From: Bigelowiella natans CCMP2755
Lineage: Eukaryota; Protista; Cercozoa
Assembly (NCBI GenBank): GCA_000320545.1
Contig: ADNK01001014.1
Span: forward strand, 62,001-126,000
DNA length: 64,000 nt
Direction: 5' to 3'
A model generated the notes under the pieces. That model was not told where the DNA came from. It was given only the letters and a program-made list of their open reading frames with translations, and searched no databases. Within the stretch, counting starts at the first letter, position 1; each line of letters opens with the position of its first letter. Made by a program: the position numbers and the translations under genes. Of the stretch, positions 30,512 through 62,229 are shown in pieces.

Positions 30512-32480
30512 ATGAAGTTTATCCAGGTTGTGCCCCAAATCAATTGGCGGTGACCAATGAGAAACTAACAAGGGTTTGAATGCATAAATTTAGGTCGATA
30601 ATACTAAGCCTGCGCTTCTCCGGCGGTTCTTTGATCTGCTCTCAAAGACTTTCGACGAGTCAGGTTACTGCCACACCAACCAGCGATGAAGGAGCCCCGT
30701 ATTTCACGGACAAAAATGAAATTATTTTATTCTTGCAGAGATGGATAGTTGGGAAAGCTGGGAGAAGGAAGCAGACTGGTCAAAGGTGGTGAATAGGCAG
30801 GAGGAGGAGGAGGAGGAGGAGGAGGTGGAGACAAGTTGCGGGATAATAACGTGACAACCTTTCTGAATTCCTAGGCAAAATGGGACTCGTCAAGGGCGAA
30901 AAAGCTCATTGTAGTCGCAATCAACAACAAATCTGAGGTAGTGATGGATCGTCCCACCATTGTATTTTGTGTGATCATGATCAGTTATCATTGTTAACGT
31001 CGTCGTCTGATGATCATGTATCTGTTCACCTGCTGCTCACCCTTTAGATACTTGGCGGCTCTATCTGGGAGTACTTTAGAGCTTCGCAGCACTATCTATT
31101 CACGTATCTTTTTGTCGCGGAGCAGGGAAGGGGGAGAGGTGCGTTTGTAGAGCTCATCATCATCATCATCATCTTCTTCTTCTTCTTCTTCTTCCAAAAA
31201 AATCAATCCAACGAACCTATACATGGTGGTATGTTGATGTCGCTGGATCCCTCCCCCCCCTCTCCCCCTTGTTGATGTTGTTGTTGCTGCTGCTGCTGTA
31301 AGGTCTGGCTTTCCAGTGTTCCGTGAAAACATGGCAAGCAGCCTGTCGGTTAGAACAGGAGAGGGGCTGCAGCTTCACACATATATTCTGCGAAATGCAT
31401 GATCCAAGGTATAGGTAGCAATGATTGCCAGTGCTGGTTGTTCTGTACTTCTCCACCATTATTTCTTCTCCTTTACCAAGAATCACCTCGGCGGAAAATG
31501 ACGTTATCGATCCTTACGAGAGACTGCGCATGTTCCAGCATTTGGGCGTCAGGGGTGTCAGGGTTAGATTAACCAACAAACACAGAGGAGGGCTGAGGGT
31601 GGGGGAAAAGACAGTAGGTGGAAATGAAAGCTCAATTCAGCTTATAGTTACTTTGCGAGGACTTAAATAAAATTATTCATTACTACCCTTATAATGCAGA
31701 TTATATGTGATTATTGGATATGACAATTCTCTGAATTTTTACTGGCCGCTATGCTCTCGTCTTGTCCTAGCTTCGCTCTCGACTATCCCCCTCCTCACCG
31801 CCCCCCTGCCATCATCCATCAAATAGGGCCTTGAGTTCTTTCAGCCCCCTCTCCACGAAGGTGACAAGCCGCAGCCGTTTCTACTTGGCGTCGTCATCAC
31901 TCCGAAAGTTAGCATCGAAGAGAAGACAGGCACTCCTCAAATTGAGCGAGAAGCACTCGGTCAGAGTAGAGTGAGGGGGGGGGGGGGGTATGAGACGGAG
32001 AAAAGAGGAAACAAGGGTAGGGGATAGAGATTGTCAGATCGAAAAGTTGAAGCTGAAGATAGTGAGGATTCTTCCTCGCTTTTTTGCTGATGAGTGGCAG
32101 CGATGGTGCTAATGATGGCGACGGTTTTATTTTAGTGGCGTTCATCTGCGACTACTACCATGACCTCATCGGGCCTGATTACGCTACAAACCCCTACTTC
32201 AAACGAATCATGGCCTCGGTGCCGCAGCCGGCTATTCTGCCACTCCACCAGTTTGAAATAGAGCTCCAGCAAGAGAAGAACACGAAGAAGAAGAAGGCTC
32301 GCAATCATAAACACAGGCAACACAAACACGCACAGCAGCAACGAAGGAGGCGGAAGCAGCGACATGCGGTGAGTTTTGATGACACCCAAATGCACAAATG
32401 CCGATGATGATACAGCAGACCGACTGCCGAAGCTTACACGTGTATACAATAGATATTGCCGCAAGTGCGTATTTTTATAT

Positions 32481-32516
<36 letters not shown>

Positions 32517-32668
32517 CATATACATATCTACACGAAAGGGTGGCGAAGAGGAGAAAAGGAAGAGAGTGATCATCGTCGGCGCGGGAATTTCGGGGCTGGC
32601 CTGTGCACAGAAACTCGTGGAACACGGCGGATTTGATGTCCGTTAGCTCTACTGATGATAAAAGAACA

Positions 32669-32700
<32 letters not shown>

Positions 32701-33042
32701 AATGACGAGGTTAATTATGATAAGTAACAATAATAGTAATGATTACAGTGGCAACAACAGACGCTTTGGCGTTTTCTCAGAGCTCTAATGTGCACAATAA
32801 AAGATGATTATTATTCTCCCTCTCTTCCTACTATTGCTCCCGCTACTTCTACTTTTGCTATCACTCCTCCTCCTCCTCCTCCTCATACTACTACTACTAC
32901 TACTACTACTACTGCTGCTGCTGCCATTGATACAACTACCACAAAGGTAACTGTTCTTGAGGCGCGAAACCGAATCGGAGGCCGCATATGGTCAACACGG
33001 TTGTTTGATGAAGTATTGGTCCGTGATCACTATCATCACATT

Positions 33043-33074
<32 letters not shown>

Positions 33075-33530
33075 TGTCGTCGTCACTGCTATCATTATCA
33101 TCCTGATTTGAGGGATATATATGTGAATATTTTCTTCTCCTTCTTCTCCTTCTCCTTCTTCCTCCTCTTCTGTTTTTCCTTCAACAACAGGTGGAAGCAG
33201 GGGCTGCATGGTTCCACGGCACAGAAGGCAATGAGTTCTTTGAGAAGGCGAAGGCCATAATGCCGGAGCTCAAACTCCATCCGATGCCAATCACTTCCAT
33301 TCATACTGCGTTAAGACCTCATGGTATTACAATCTCACTACACAGCAATGCGTCTCTCTTAAGAGCAGCATTGAAGTAACATAAGACAGATATTCGCAAC
33401 AACAACAACCATCATCATCGTCGTCGTCATTGTTGTCGTCGTCGCCGCCATCATCAATCAATTGTTATCATCGTTATCATGACCATAAATGTTCAATGAG
33501 GAGCTTGTTATTGAGTATTAAGATTTCACG

Positions 33531-33563
<33 letters not shown>

Positions 33564-35992
33564 GGCTCGGAGAGCATTGCGCCTGATGTAATGCTAGAGG
33601 CGCTGATGAATTTCGAGGCAATGGTAGAGCAGCTCAAAGAGGAGAAAAAATCCCTTGGAATCTCCGAGAGTACCGGGTTGAAAACTGCCCTTGAGTTGCT
33701 TGTTAGGCGTCATCCAGACCTCACGCGGTGCGTTCCAAGCGAAATATTGTATTTTAAGAACTGCCATATTTATCGTCATCACCACCATTATCGTCGTCGT
33801 CGTCGTCATCATCAGGGAATGGAGACATGAGATGTCAGAAGCTTTCCGATATATCCTCTCGAAGGTAACGGCTTTACTGTTGGATTATAAATATGCATTG
33901 AGCGTCATACAGAAGCTATGGCGTGTCTGTCTGTGAGTGTATGTGTGTGTGGGTGTGTGGGTGGGTGAGTGTTGCATGTGTTGTGTGTGCTGTTGGAGGA
34001 AATTAAAGGATACTACCCACATTTAATTCCAAAGATCGAATCCGAAGAAAACACGCACATGGATTCTCTCTCGGCGCTACACTTTGACTCAGGCGATTAT
34101 TACGAGGTATTAGTCAATAGCATGACTATCAGCATTGTCAAGGTCATACTTATCGTCCCTGCCATCTCTCAGGGGGGGGATCAGTACATCGTGGGAGGCA
34201 TCAAGCAGATTCTCACTACGATGAGCGCTGAAATTGACATTCGATTCAAGACCATAGTGACAGAGATCGAGGTCTGTTTGAGTTGATGATTTGAGAATGG
34301 CGCTAACATGATGATAAATACGCTGCTGGCGACGACTGCTTCGATTCTTGCGGTATGACGACCATTGTTTCAGTTCTACCATCACCTTTTGGACTTTTTA
34401 GGAAAACAAAGAAAAAGGCAAAGTCGTTGTATCAACGGACGATGGAGCTGTGGAAATGGCGGACGCCGCCGTCCTCACTGTGCCTCTTGGGGTAGGGTTT
34501 GAGGATAATAATAATAGTAATAATAATGATAATTGTATGAACAACAACAATAATAGTAATAATAATAATAATAGCTCTAAAGCGGTGATGATGAGCATGG
34601 TGGATAGGACGATTGAAGCGGCAAAAAACCACCTGCAACATCACCACTACAACCGCAATAATATTTACCAAAGGTGCTTAAAAGGGGACGAATATCAATC
34701 CTTCCAAGATTGCCAGTAGAGAAGCAAGATGCGATTTCTCGGTTGGGTTTTGGCCAAATGGACAAGGTCATCGTAGCAGCAGCAGTTGTAGGAGTAGTAG
34801 TAATGTGTGCGTGTGCGTGTGCATGTGTGTAAACTGCCCAAGATATATCATAAGTGTGCGAATGATTCCTACTCTTCGTATCTTGGTCTTCTTTTTGGAT
34901 CTCCCACCTCTCTCTTCTCTCCATAGGTACTGCTGCAGTACAAGGAGTGCTTTTGGCCAAGTGGCACGTACGTCTTCGGTTATAACTTTCCCAGCGAGAC
35001 AAAATCTACCGCTCCAGGACTCTCATCGTCGATAATATCACAACGCCCTCGGCACAATCTGTTTATCTTCAACCTCGTTCCGGGTGCATGCAAAGCGTGT
35101 GTTAGTTTGCATGAATTAGTGCCTCCTTCGCCCATCATGATTGTTACCCCGACCAAAATCTTTGATTTTATGGTGATGATTCCGCTCATTTTGTGGCCCT
35201 TTCAGTTACGGGGAAAGCCGTTCTGGTCGCCCTGATCACGGGAGATTTACAGCAGATTTTGGCCGAGAAGCGGCGAAATAACACGTCTTTCCCCGAGATT
35301 TCCACCGTAAGGCAAGCGCTAGAGAAAATGTTTGGGCGAAACCCTACTCCTGATAAAGCTCGAGTCGTACGATGGGGCGATGATAACTTCACACACGGGT
35401 AGTTATTAGTGAGTGGCCACCACACAGTGCTTGATACATGCGGTTCTACTGGCTGTGATCTGGTGCCTTCGGCTCTGCAGCAAGCAAACAAACAATCAAT
35501 CATCAGCGGTGTGGATGGTGGTACACTGTATTTTCAGAGCGTATACTTTCATGGCTAAGGGAGCGGAGCCGAAGGATATTGAAACTCTTGCCGCCCCCCT
35601 TTACTCTGGCAAGCTAGGTTGGCAATGCGATATACATACATAGTACACAGAGTAGGGCGGACGGCGTGTGACAAATAAAGTAATCGTGGCCATTGTAGAA
35701 TGCCAAAAAATCGGGATTCTTATTCATAAATCCGAACACACCAGGTAGTTTTTAAGCAGCCATGTGTTTCCTTACGATTGTTTATGCAGGATTTGCCGGA
35801 GAGCACACATCGCGTAACCGATACGGATATATGGACGGAGCGTATTGCAGTGGAATTCGAGAAGGAAATCGACTCATCAAACTGTTGGACTTGTCGCAGG
35901 GTCACGAGAATAGTAGAGACGAAGACACAATACGTAGCGATAGCGTCCTTGCTAGAGAACGAAGTAATAATGTACAGCGGAGCAAACTTTAG
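30512..35992 (+). CDS. GNAT N-acetyltransferase / FAD-dependent amine (polyamine) oxidase, apparent fusion with C-terminal PTS1
   Basis: GNAT exons 30512-32368 give FTYLFVAEQGRGRGLA, IFCEMHDP, ERLRMFQHLG and FFQPPL. Oxidase exons from 32539 give VIIVGAGISGLACA, VLEARNRIGGRI, EAGAAWFHG, TVPLG|VLK, RW..D..T.GAY and FAGEHT..YGYMDGAYCSGIRE, ending SKL*. The oxidase call is firm; the fusion is inferred from splice phase. Confidence 0.85.
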
Positions 35993-45101: not shown

Positions 45102-47164
45102 TTATGGTTGTTGAGTTGGAACTGTGTCAGTAACAGACGCTACTGCTGGTGTGCTACTTGTATTTTCGGAGCTTGGTGTTGTTGTAGTTGTCGTAGTGGT
45201 GGTAGTGGTGGTGGTGGTGGTGGCATTTGTTTTAGGGGTTTCAGCAGCAGCAGCTGCAGTGCCAATGCTTGCTGAAGGAACTGGTGTTCCTGCAACTGTA
45301 GTAGCTGCTACAATTACTGCTGCTCCAGTCGGTGCTGGCGGTGGTGGCGGTGGCTGTGGCGGGCCTACTACTGCTGCTGCCGCGGCAGCCGCAGCTGCTG
45401 TGGAGGGGGCGGCTGCAATTGCTGATGGTCCTGTAAGGGCAGTTCCCACAGCAGTCCCTCCGCTAGTATTATTACCAGATGATGTTATTGGAGGAATTAT
45501 GGCGGGCTTTCTCCCTTTTTTGTGCACATTCTTGTGGCGTTTTAGGTTAGTAGCCTGAGCGAAACCTCTGCCGCACTCAGAGCAGACATACGGCTTCTCA
45601 CCGGTGTGAGTCCGCAAATGGGTAATGACGTTTGAACGAGCTGAGAAAATTCTGTGGCAGACGAGGCATTGATACTTCAGATTTATGCGGCCTGTAGCCT
45701 GGTTCAGCATCGGTACTTTTTCGTAAAGCATATCTGGCGTTCTTTGCGCGAGTTGTGAAGGATCCAAAGGCGCTCTTTGAGTAGGAGGACGGACTAAACG
45801 AATAGGTTGGTACAAGGGATTGTACATTCCGGGTTGCGGTTGCTGTTGCTGTTGCTGCCTCTGTTGAGGGTTAAAGTTCGAATGGTGACCTTGCACAACA
45901 GGAGGCTGGTCTCCTGCTCCGGCCCATGCTCCATATTGGCCATAAGGGAATCCCGGGTGATAACCACCCGCCAGCTGTGGTGCCATTGTCTTGGCCCCCT
46001 TGTTCGCTGCTGTCGTTGCTCCTGTCGTAGTACCAGAACTTGTAGTTTGGTTCGAGTCCGGTGAGGGTTTAGCTACCGGCTGGCCGTCCTTTTTCTCTTC
46101 AGTCTTCTCTGGTTTACTACCGCTAGAACCTGTAGGTGTATTTTCGCCCTTCAAAGACTTGTTCTCAGGTCCAGCACTGGCGCTAGCAGCAGCCGTCGCT
46201 GAACCTTGGGGAGAGAGCGCAGCTTGAGGGTGTGGCTGCATCGGCCAGTAGTACATCCCATTGTTATAGGGCACCCCCCCTTGCATCGGATGGTACACGG
46301 GCATCCTGGCCATATTTGCCATCCCCGTTGGTTGAGGACGCATTTGCTGCATGAATTGAGGCGGCTGCATCGGAAAAACCCCAATCTGACCTGGAATCAT
46401 CTGATTTTGATGCTGCATCTGCTGTTGTGTCGCTCCCGTCTCAACAGGCTTTTTGGTATTTGAAGCAGCTTGTCCATCGCTTCCCGTGGTCGTACTCGAC
46501 TTTGCGGCATTGTCATCAGCTGGTGCCTTCTTTTCCATAGCTACCCCAGCTACTTTTGCGGTACTATTTGCGCCGGCCAGGTTATTCGGGGCTACATTTG
46601 GTTGTGGGAGCTGCTGAAGCTGGTAGTGTATACCTGCCGCTGCTGCCGGGTTTGTTTGATAACCCTGATAAGGATACGGCTGGCCAAATTGAGGGTGTGG
46701 AGCAAATTGCTGAAAGCCCATCACAGGAGGACCCGGGTGGTACATACCCTGCATTGGACCGCCGTTCCCAAACATAGCTGGGTGTGTATATTGCGGGTGT
46801 ACCTGGATTATTGGAGTTTGCATCTGCTGGGCCTTTGGAGCTTCTGATCCATCAACAGGTTTCGAAGATGGATCAGGATTCGTTTTGATTCGTGCTTGTT
46901 TGGTTGCTTCTTTATCCTTACTCGAACCGAGAGCCTCCCCAGCATCTGAAATACAAACAGTTCATCTCTTGGGAAGCACATATTTTGCGTACCCGTACCT
47001 CTTTTCTTGCCGCGTGAATCTTTGTCATCGCTGGGCGAAGAATCTGTGTTTACTTTAGTGTTGTCATCCGTTTTCACATTCGCCTCTGCAGCCTCTTTCG
47101 ATTCCTCTTTTTTTGTGGTGTTCATCCCAGCTTCTGAGCTGGCAGCTTCATCGCTCTTTCCCAT
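45102..47164 (-). CDS. C2H2 zinc-finger transcription factor (two fingers) with Gln/Pro-rich low-complexity region
   Basis: YQCLVCHRIFSARSNVITHLRTH-TGEKP-YVCSECGRGFAQATNLKRHKNVH in ORF 45102-46823. The upstream exon from ATG 47164 joins through one short intron near 46945-46996. Confidence 0.92.
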
Positions 47165-61805: not shown

Positions 61806-62229
61806 TTAGGTTCTTACGAAGAAAGCAGCACTGACGATGATGTACGCGACGACCAGCATCGCGCCCTTGAGGTAGTTAGACTCTCCATCCCCCACAAGGA
61901 ATCCCACGGCGAGTGTAGACACAAGCACTACCGCTGTCGATCAGAAGAGGGGGAAGGGCAGCAGCAGATGAATCAACGCATTTAAAGGCAGACCGATTAA
62001 AATGCAGCGATCCGTGGGTGTTTCACCCATGCAGTAGTAGTGGTAGTAATAGTAATAGTAGTTGGGGTGATAGTAGCAGTAGTAGTAGTAGGCGCAAATA
62101 TATATGAAAATAAAGGGAAAATATGAAATATGTGTATAATATATAAATACACACACGTCGTCGGCTTTCTCAAATAAATGGGTCGCATGCTCCATTGTTC
62201 TCTTCCTCTTGGTACTAATGTTGTTATTA

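Follow-up and report, generated by a model that had tools for sequence, protein, structure and literature searches.

A candidate fusion of a divergent GNAT-like domain with a peroxisomal flavin amine oxidase in Bigelowiella natans

The cercozoan protist Bigelowiella natans carries, on the + strand of contig ADNK01001014.1, a dense run of small exons that appears to lead from a GNAT-like acetyltransferase region directly into a flavin amine oxidase, and the question this raises is whether a single gene specifies both domains or whether two genes of the same orientation lie in tandem. The stretch analyzed (the window) comprises 64,000 nucleotides (nt), positions 62,001 to 126,000 of the contig, and the locus occupies 30512-35992 in its numbering, which is used throughout; genome-wide searches covered the 91.4-Mb assembly of 3736 contigs. 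Weighing the coding character of the exons, the segment that joins the two halves and the remote similarities of the encoded protein, we lean somewhat towards one fused gene of 22 exons and about 780 residues. The first ~225 residues of its product would make up an acyl-CoA N-acyltransferase domain of divergent GNAT type, the next ~55 would end as a basic low-complexity linker, and the final 500, with -SKL at their very end, would constitute a flavin adenine dinucleotide (FAD)-dependent amine oxidase of the polyamine/spermine-oxidase type.

A preliminary description of this DNA had proposed nine upstream exons that join in frame and encode an acetyl-CoA motif A, a phase-0 intron that connects them to the oxidase, and a complete oxidase with a C-terminal -SKL; as reading frames, all three features bear scrutiny. 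In a script check, each of the nine upstream exons was found to be preceded by AG and followed by GT, and together they amount to 840 nt, or 280 codons, free of stops and containing the motif Q-G-R-G-R-G-L-A. The thirteen oxidase exons, whose borders we derived from the sequence and checked by script, add up to 1503 nt (500 amino acids plus the stop, the end R-S-K-L-stop lying at 35981-35992), and every intron among them is of the GT..AG type. The linking intron (32369-32538) is present as described, being 170 nt long, opening with GTGAGT and closing with AAAG, and its phase of 0 brings the upstream frame into that of the oxidase. Joined, the two sets yield 22 exons, 21 GT..AG introns and 780 open codons ending in -SKL. 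Bigelowiella natans is an intron-rich organism, with 7.85 introns per gene (PMC8887013). An open spliced path of this kind is by itself weak evidence, as one can be found in almost any sequence.

The upstream exons are nevertheless real coding sequence, a conclusion that we draw because codon usage, splice-site scores and an unconstrained gene parse agree on their reading frames. The codon-usage model, derived from three unrelated long open frames of the same genome, took oxidase-intron trinucleotides as its background; the upstream exons score +0.29 bit/codon when read in the frame proposed, against +0.28 for the oxidase exons and approximately zero for the other two upstream frames. Only 3 of 5000 chains of random open fragments drawn from the rest of the window matched the upstream total. 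With splice-site matrices trained solely on the twelve internal oxidase introns, the upstream donors average +1.7 (-1.9 for all GT dinucleotides in the region) and the acceptors +0.4 (-5.1 for all AG). A dynamic-programming parse that combines codon and splice-site scores, run at several intron penalties, returned at every penalty tried a single path that runs from the upstream region through the 32368^32539 junction into the oxidase, and it recovers the frames of upstream exons 3, 4, 5, 7, 8 and 9. The distribution of tandem repeats follows the same division, with all but three of 22 repeat rows falling within the proposed introns of both halves, the linking segment included; two of the exceptions lie in exons 7 and 9, and the third, a GT-rich row, straddles the end of an intron and the 5' edge of the open frame of oxidase exon 6. 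A separate feature of the locus is that between 30799 and 34827 nearly every intron holds a microsatellite, mostly a trinucleotide array of 6-23 copies, with a (TA)15 array in the linking segment.

The individual upstream exons differ in how firmly they are placed. Exon 4 (30875-30937) and exon 9 (32136-32368; about 50 ordinary residues followed by a K/R/Q/H-rich tail) are reproduced exactly by the parse at every intron penalty, the former also having sound borders and codon score. For exon 5 (31048-31138) the parse uses the same acceptor, and for exon 7 (31481-31562; borders and codon score likewise in order) and exon 8 (31827-31959; +0.61 bit/codon) the same acceptor and frame. Exons 3, 7 and 8 run on in the parse into glutamate- or glycine-rich stretches, exon 3 (30739-30785), which has consistent borders and codon score, being extended in the same frame to 30824 through an (AGG)n run. 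The parse departs further from the exon model of the preliminary description in skipping exons 2 and 6. Exon 2 (30594-30663), bounded by AG and GT and in frame, scores +0.28 bit/codon and is shortened or omitted, whereas exon 6 (31303-31408) is the weakest of all, with +0.05 bit/codon and an acceptor score of -2.4, and is skipped at penalties of 6 bits or more. Exon 1 (30512-30526), which comprises five codons beginning with an ATG, followed by a GT donor, is the least certain, and is kept only at the lowest intron penalty. Ahead of it, the segment 30000-30499 has a GC content of 34%, against 41-49% around it, and is AT-rich and gene-free, a composition in keeping with intergenic or promoter DNA. 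A search of the genome for paralogues of upstream exons 8 and 9 found none.

The identity of the downstream half is secure: motifs and exon-wise matches lead us to predict a full-length enzyme, a flavin amine oxidase of the polyamine/spermine-oxidase type. Family models were compared with its exons one by one. Exon 1 (32539-32637), which carries the GxGxxG motif at 32578-32595 and is matched by nine public amine oxidases, scores 25.2 bits against NAD_binding_8 (profile positions 1-20). Pfam Amino_oxidase (PF01593; profile length 443, curated cut-off 19.8 bits) matches exon 2 (32947-33018) with 27.7 bits at positions 17-37, exon 8 (34402-34491, also matched by public amine oxidases) with 15.1 bits at 230-257, and exon 13 (35790-35992, which includes the C-terminal FAD motif and runs to the stop codon) with 20.8 bits at 415-442; the three matches are thus ordered along the profile, and two of them exceed the cut-off on their own. 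When 14 public proteins of the amine oxidase family were compared with the region by tblastn, their matches fell in order and ended at the derived exon borders. Two of them continue over introns: P0008 passes at its residue 296 across 32637^32947, crossing the join of exons 1 and 2 free of gaps, and residues 285 and 286 of P0012 meet at 34766^34927, the join of exon 9 (34674-34766) and exon 10 (34927-35083). Matches from eight proteins stop exactly at both borders of exon 9, in which the motif L-G-F-G-x-x-D-K with the conserved lysine can be read, as can the histidine of the G-A-x-W-x-H-G motif (here G-A-A-W-F-H-G) in exon 3 (33191-33323). The latter exon is matched in order by P0009 and P0012, and had no match among PDB chains. 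P0009 also matches 34170-34271, corresponding to exon 7 (34173-34271), and weak matches to public amine oxidases end at 35399, next to the border of exon 11 (35206-35398). Borders, frame and codon score concur for exons 7 and 11 as they do for exon 5 (33816-33864) and exon 6 (34035-34106); exon 4 (33565-33727) and exon 12 (35538-35617) have consistent borders and frames, with codon scores of +0.45 and +0.54 bit/codon, respectively.

Exon 13 resembles, among characterized proteins, the C-terminal ends of maize PAO (1b37), mouse PAOX (5lae, a weak match), yeast Fms1 and LSD1, and exon 9 aligns, again weakly (E=1.6), with residues 282-311 of human spermine oxidase SMOX, the conserved lysine included. 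The single-exon E-values are weak (0.015 to 1.6), and such matches would not fix the subfamily, whether PAO or SMOX, PAOX or Fms1. The relationship to LSD1/KDM1 extends to a common amine oxidase fold and C-terminal FAD motif. The preliminary description had regarded an LSD1-type histone demethylase as less likely for want of a visible SWIRM domain, and this judgment is strengthened: exon-wise family scans gave no match to SWIRM, the 500-residue oxidase has no long insertion of the tower type, and the C-terminal signal speaks against a nuclear role, so that we reject this reading. That signal, S-K-L at 35981-35989, is read directly from the C-terminus, and its prediction as a canonical type 1 peroxisomal targeting signal (PTS1) is solid. 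The same genome encodes a Pex2/Pex12 peroxin (61 bits against the Pex2_Pex12 profile, which was matched in none of 14 prokaryote controls), and for this reason we take -SKL to be a meaningful peroxisomal address.

Further PAO/LSD1-like amine oxidase genes, at least two in number, lie on contigs C1593 and C3241 of this genome. One of them corresponds to the public model jgi/Bigna1/69266, an 861-residue protein that shows extended runs of serine and of glutamine and has a single exon of 699 residues, the relatives of which are found in Amorphochlora amoebiformis and among JGI transcript contigs.

Whether the two halves belong to one gene depends on the segment between them. If the intron at 32369-32538 is retained, the upstream frame reads 12 further codons to a stop at 32405-32407 (open reading frame 32084-32407), 131 nt before oxidase exon 1, in agreement with the ~130 bp given earlier. 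Within the segment lie two ATG codons in frame with the oxidase, at 32398-32400 (open reading frame 32398-32646) and at 32512-32514, and these make conceivable a pair of tandem genes on the same strand, of which the GNAT-like one would end at 32405-32407 and the oxidase would start at ATG 32512, or at 32398 followed by a short intron, the in-frame GT..AG pair then being a coincidence. We regard this arrangement as rather unlikely, though it has to be taken seriously.

Several results indeed tell against the fusion. Among 14 possible in-frame, stop-free GT..AG links, that at 32369-32538 scores best (4.0 bits; donor +2.3, acceptor +1.7), but randomly drawn site scores provide a link at least as good with P=0.18, that is, about one time in five by chance; the in-frame linking intron thus exists but is statistically not compelling. 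The best two-gene parse falls just 4-8 bits below the fused one. The ATG at 32512, which the parse chooses if starts upstream of 32369 are barred, lies 22 codons ahead of GxGxxG and needs no intron, thereby giving the oxidase a normal lead of 22 residues and a typical N-terminus. The oxidases of this family known from animals, plants and yeast are, moreover, stand-alone enzymes. Finally, transcripts, gene models and orthologues were sought for both halves, and none was retrieved for the locus; as records of this genome or a very close one may be missing from the collections searched, we do not count such blanks as evidence against expression.

Other considerations favor a single gene, the geometry of the segment among them. 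A separate oxidase would begin either 105 nt past the upstream stop, at ATG 32512, or 7 nt before that stop, at ATG 32398, in the latter case overlapping the upstream frame. Unless the genes overlap, those 105 nt would have to accommodate the 3' untranslated region of one gene and the 5' untranslated region of the next, together with a poly(A) site and a promoter, and a (TA)15 array (32483-32513) sits directly on the 32512 start. The other start requires a donor at 32440 that scores -3.4 if the TA array is to be avoided. We rejected a start at 32398 reading straight through the array, because a coding dinucleotide array shifts the frame upon any change in its length. The linking segment also scores like the other introns of the gene in all three frames, and it contrasts with the AT-rich gap of 34% GC ahead of 30512. 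Removal of the 170-nt intron appears to us the somewhat preferable interpretation.

A variant of the single-gene interpretation, in which one transcription unit gives two products, would have the spliced message encode the fused protein and the message retaining the intron encode an acetyltransferase-like protein that stops at 32405-32407. Both outcomes are readable, as the retained intron meets its stop after a dozen codons, and another intron, the one that follows oxidase exon 6, can likewise be read through in frame. We consider the variant distinctly improbable as an account in its own right; the isoforms are putative, and it refines the single fused gene instead of competing with it independently. 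This other intron, which separates oxidase exons 6 and 7, measures 66 nt (34107-34172), and its retention would add 22 residues with no stop (open reading frame 33969-34286).

Given that the upstream exons are coding, do they specify a GNAT? Curated models and solved structures are silent on this. Family and structure searches were run exon by exon, and with upstream exons of 21-77 residues and a motif A split by an intron their power is very low; within that limit, single upstream exons had no match in Pfam, NCBIfam, PDB chains or Atlas clusters. Exons 5 and 7, compared with solved structures, retrieved no GNAT of any kind, SSAT included, at E-values up to 10, and a genome-wide scan with Pfam Acetyltransf_1 returned 35 candidates, none of them at this locus. 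Exon 6, whose codon and acceptor scores are the weakest of the model, is moreover one that the GNAT fold requires, and the parse omits it.

Comparisons with a local set of GNAT domains point towards a GNAT. We built a local GNAT profile from 102 domains, 12 from the Bigelowiella natans genome and 90 from five bacterial genomes, against which the script-joined N-terminus scores 10.8 bits, a value reached by none of 1000 shuffles (maximum 8.2); the alignment covers residues 18-98, from helix alpha-1 through motif A. The best pairwise match among the 102 domains is to a bacterial protein of the Acetyltransf_10/PRK09831 type (residues 9-104, 8 bits, E=0.0055), a similarity spanning alpha-1 to motif A that is uninformative on orthology or substrate. 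Another bacterial GNAT (L180) aligns over the join of exons 5 and 6 into the next strand, which favors the exon 6 of the preliminary description over the exon-skipping parse. Independently of any joining, weak tblastn matches of the 102 domains to the region move along the profile from the earlier to the later exons (Spearman 0.21, P=5.5e-4, an optimistic value since the matches are not independent), the corresponding trend in an upstream control region being 0.00.

Read as a GNAT, the protein would have its alpha-1 region in exon 2 and its beta-2 region in exon 4; exon 5 would carry beta-3 and beta-4 together with the initial half of motif A, exon 6 alpha-3 and beta-5, exon 7 the alpha-4 region and exon 8 the last strands. 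The motif A sequence Q-G-R-G-R-G-L-A (31123-31310), interrupted by a 164-nt intron at 31139-31302, aligns with the R-G-x-G-x-G/A columns of GNAT domains, exon 5 itself falling on the motif-A columns of the local profile. The profile, the pairwise alignments and the exon-order trend agree in putting it after beta-4 and in proper order with the other GNAT elements. Taken together, the local profile, the exon order along it and motif A moderately support the view that the N-terminal region is a divergent GNAT, which we consider probable; there is no support for an identification as SSAT in particular. The earlier proposal of a GNAT-like N-terminus with motif A is hence upheld in part, by these three lines, although no curated family model matches any single exon.

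This last discrepancy could also be read to mean that the upstream exons are coding yet contain no working GNAT, being instead an extension at the N-terminus of the oxidase that is peculiar to this lineage, or that exons 2 and 6 have been mis-modelled. The parse that prefers a path without those two exons, the silence of curated families and solved structures and the nature of motif A, which on its own would be expected by chance an estimated 0.3 times or so in 280 residues, are all in keeping with this. Set against them are a profile score above that of every shuffle, pairwise alignments to bacterial GNATs that span motif A and the join of exons 5 and 6, and exon-wise matches that follow the order of the exons, and in their light we deem this explanation very unlikely.

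In functional terms, the fused protein as we model it would be imported whole into peroxisomes, where the N-terminal domain would use acetyl-CoA to acylate an amine and the C-terminal one would oxidize an amine with release of H2O2. In animals a GNAT, SSAT (SAT1), and the peroxisomal oxidase PAOX constitute two separate genes, SSAT being cytosolic. The two enzyme classes are the same as those proposed here, a GNAT-type enzyme and a FAD-dependent oxidase of the PAO/SMOX family, and animal PAOX and the Bigelowiella natans oxidase both bear a C-terminal peroxisomal signal, but the upstream exons differ from SSAT in showing no detectable similarity to it or to any other solved GNAT. It is tempting to speculate that the one peroxisomal polypeptide N-acetylates a polyamine or another amine with peroxisomal acetyl-CoA and hands the acetylated product to its own oxidase domain, uniting the animal pathway in a single protein, but this coupling is pure speculation on our part and we think it improbable.

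Plants offer a different precedent. Their peroxisomal PAOs (of the AtPAO2/3/4 type), like maize PAO, are stand-alone FAD enzymes of ~490-530 residues, some with a PTS1, and unlike the proposed fusion they have no N-terminal acyltransferase domain. The peroxisomal enzymes oxidize free spermine and spermidine and do not need acetylated substrates, and an attached acetyltransferase would therefore be unnecessary for back-conversion. In a published phylogeny of PAOs, rhizarian sequences share clade IV with the plant peroxisomal type (PMC7576179). No fusion of the present kind was found in that paper or in the literature searched on this architecture and on the polyamine oxidase of Bigelowiella natans.

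Should the single gene be borne out, it would bring two known families together in a domain combination that is new, and would be the first case found of both classes of polyamine back-conversion enzymes in one protein. It would further place an acetyl-CoA-dependent step in the peroxisome, which offers both acetyl-CoA and catalase, and would suggest a likely partner function for a highly divergent GNAT for which no relatives were detected. If there are two genes, the locus would consist of an ordinary peroxisomal gene of the polyamine-oxidase type beside an orphan small gene.

Searches for relatives returned little that bears on the locus itself. Word searches with exon 9 alone and with all exons together gave no match to it, and one in which oxidase exons 8 and 9 were aligned to the long open frame of a paralogue returned only the relatives of that paralogue; the profiles of the multi-exon searches were poor, as MAFFT had aligned the exon fragments on top of each other. 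Exon 9 and oxidase exon 13 were each used to scan a metagenome collection in which one or more chlorarachniophyte-like transcript contigs are present, and neither scan yielded a match. A profile search on a large scale, in which 51 residues of exon 9 were compared with 1.84 billion representatives, recovered two repeat proteins and no relative, not even the genome's own protein.

The similarity behind that last result merits a brief comment. The segment 32171-32236 of exon 9 (query residues 12-33) resembles the C-terminal motif of the WASH subunit CCDC53 (Pfam PF10152), of which eleven copies occur in P0001, a formin-like protein of 1238 residues; the E-value of 3.6e-19 obtained with P0001 is the sum of ten weak repeat matches, a single copy not being significant. 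Elsewhere in the window, at 45102-46823 on the - strand, an intron-free open frame of 573 residues, for the exact product of which a look-up gave no entry, encodes a protein rich in Q, P, A and T that displays C2H2 zinc-finger motifs.

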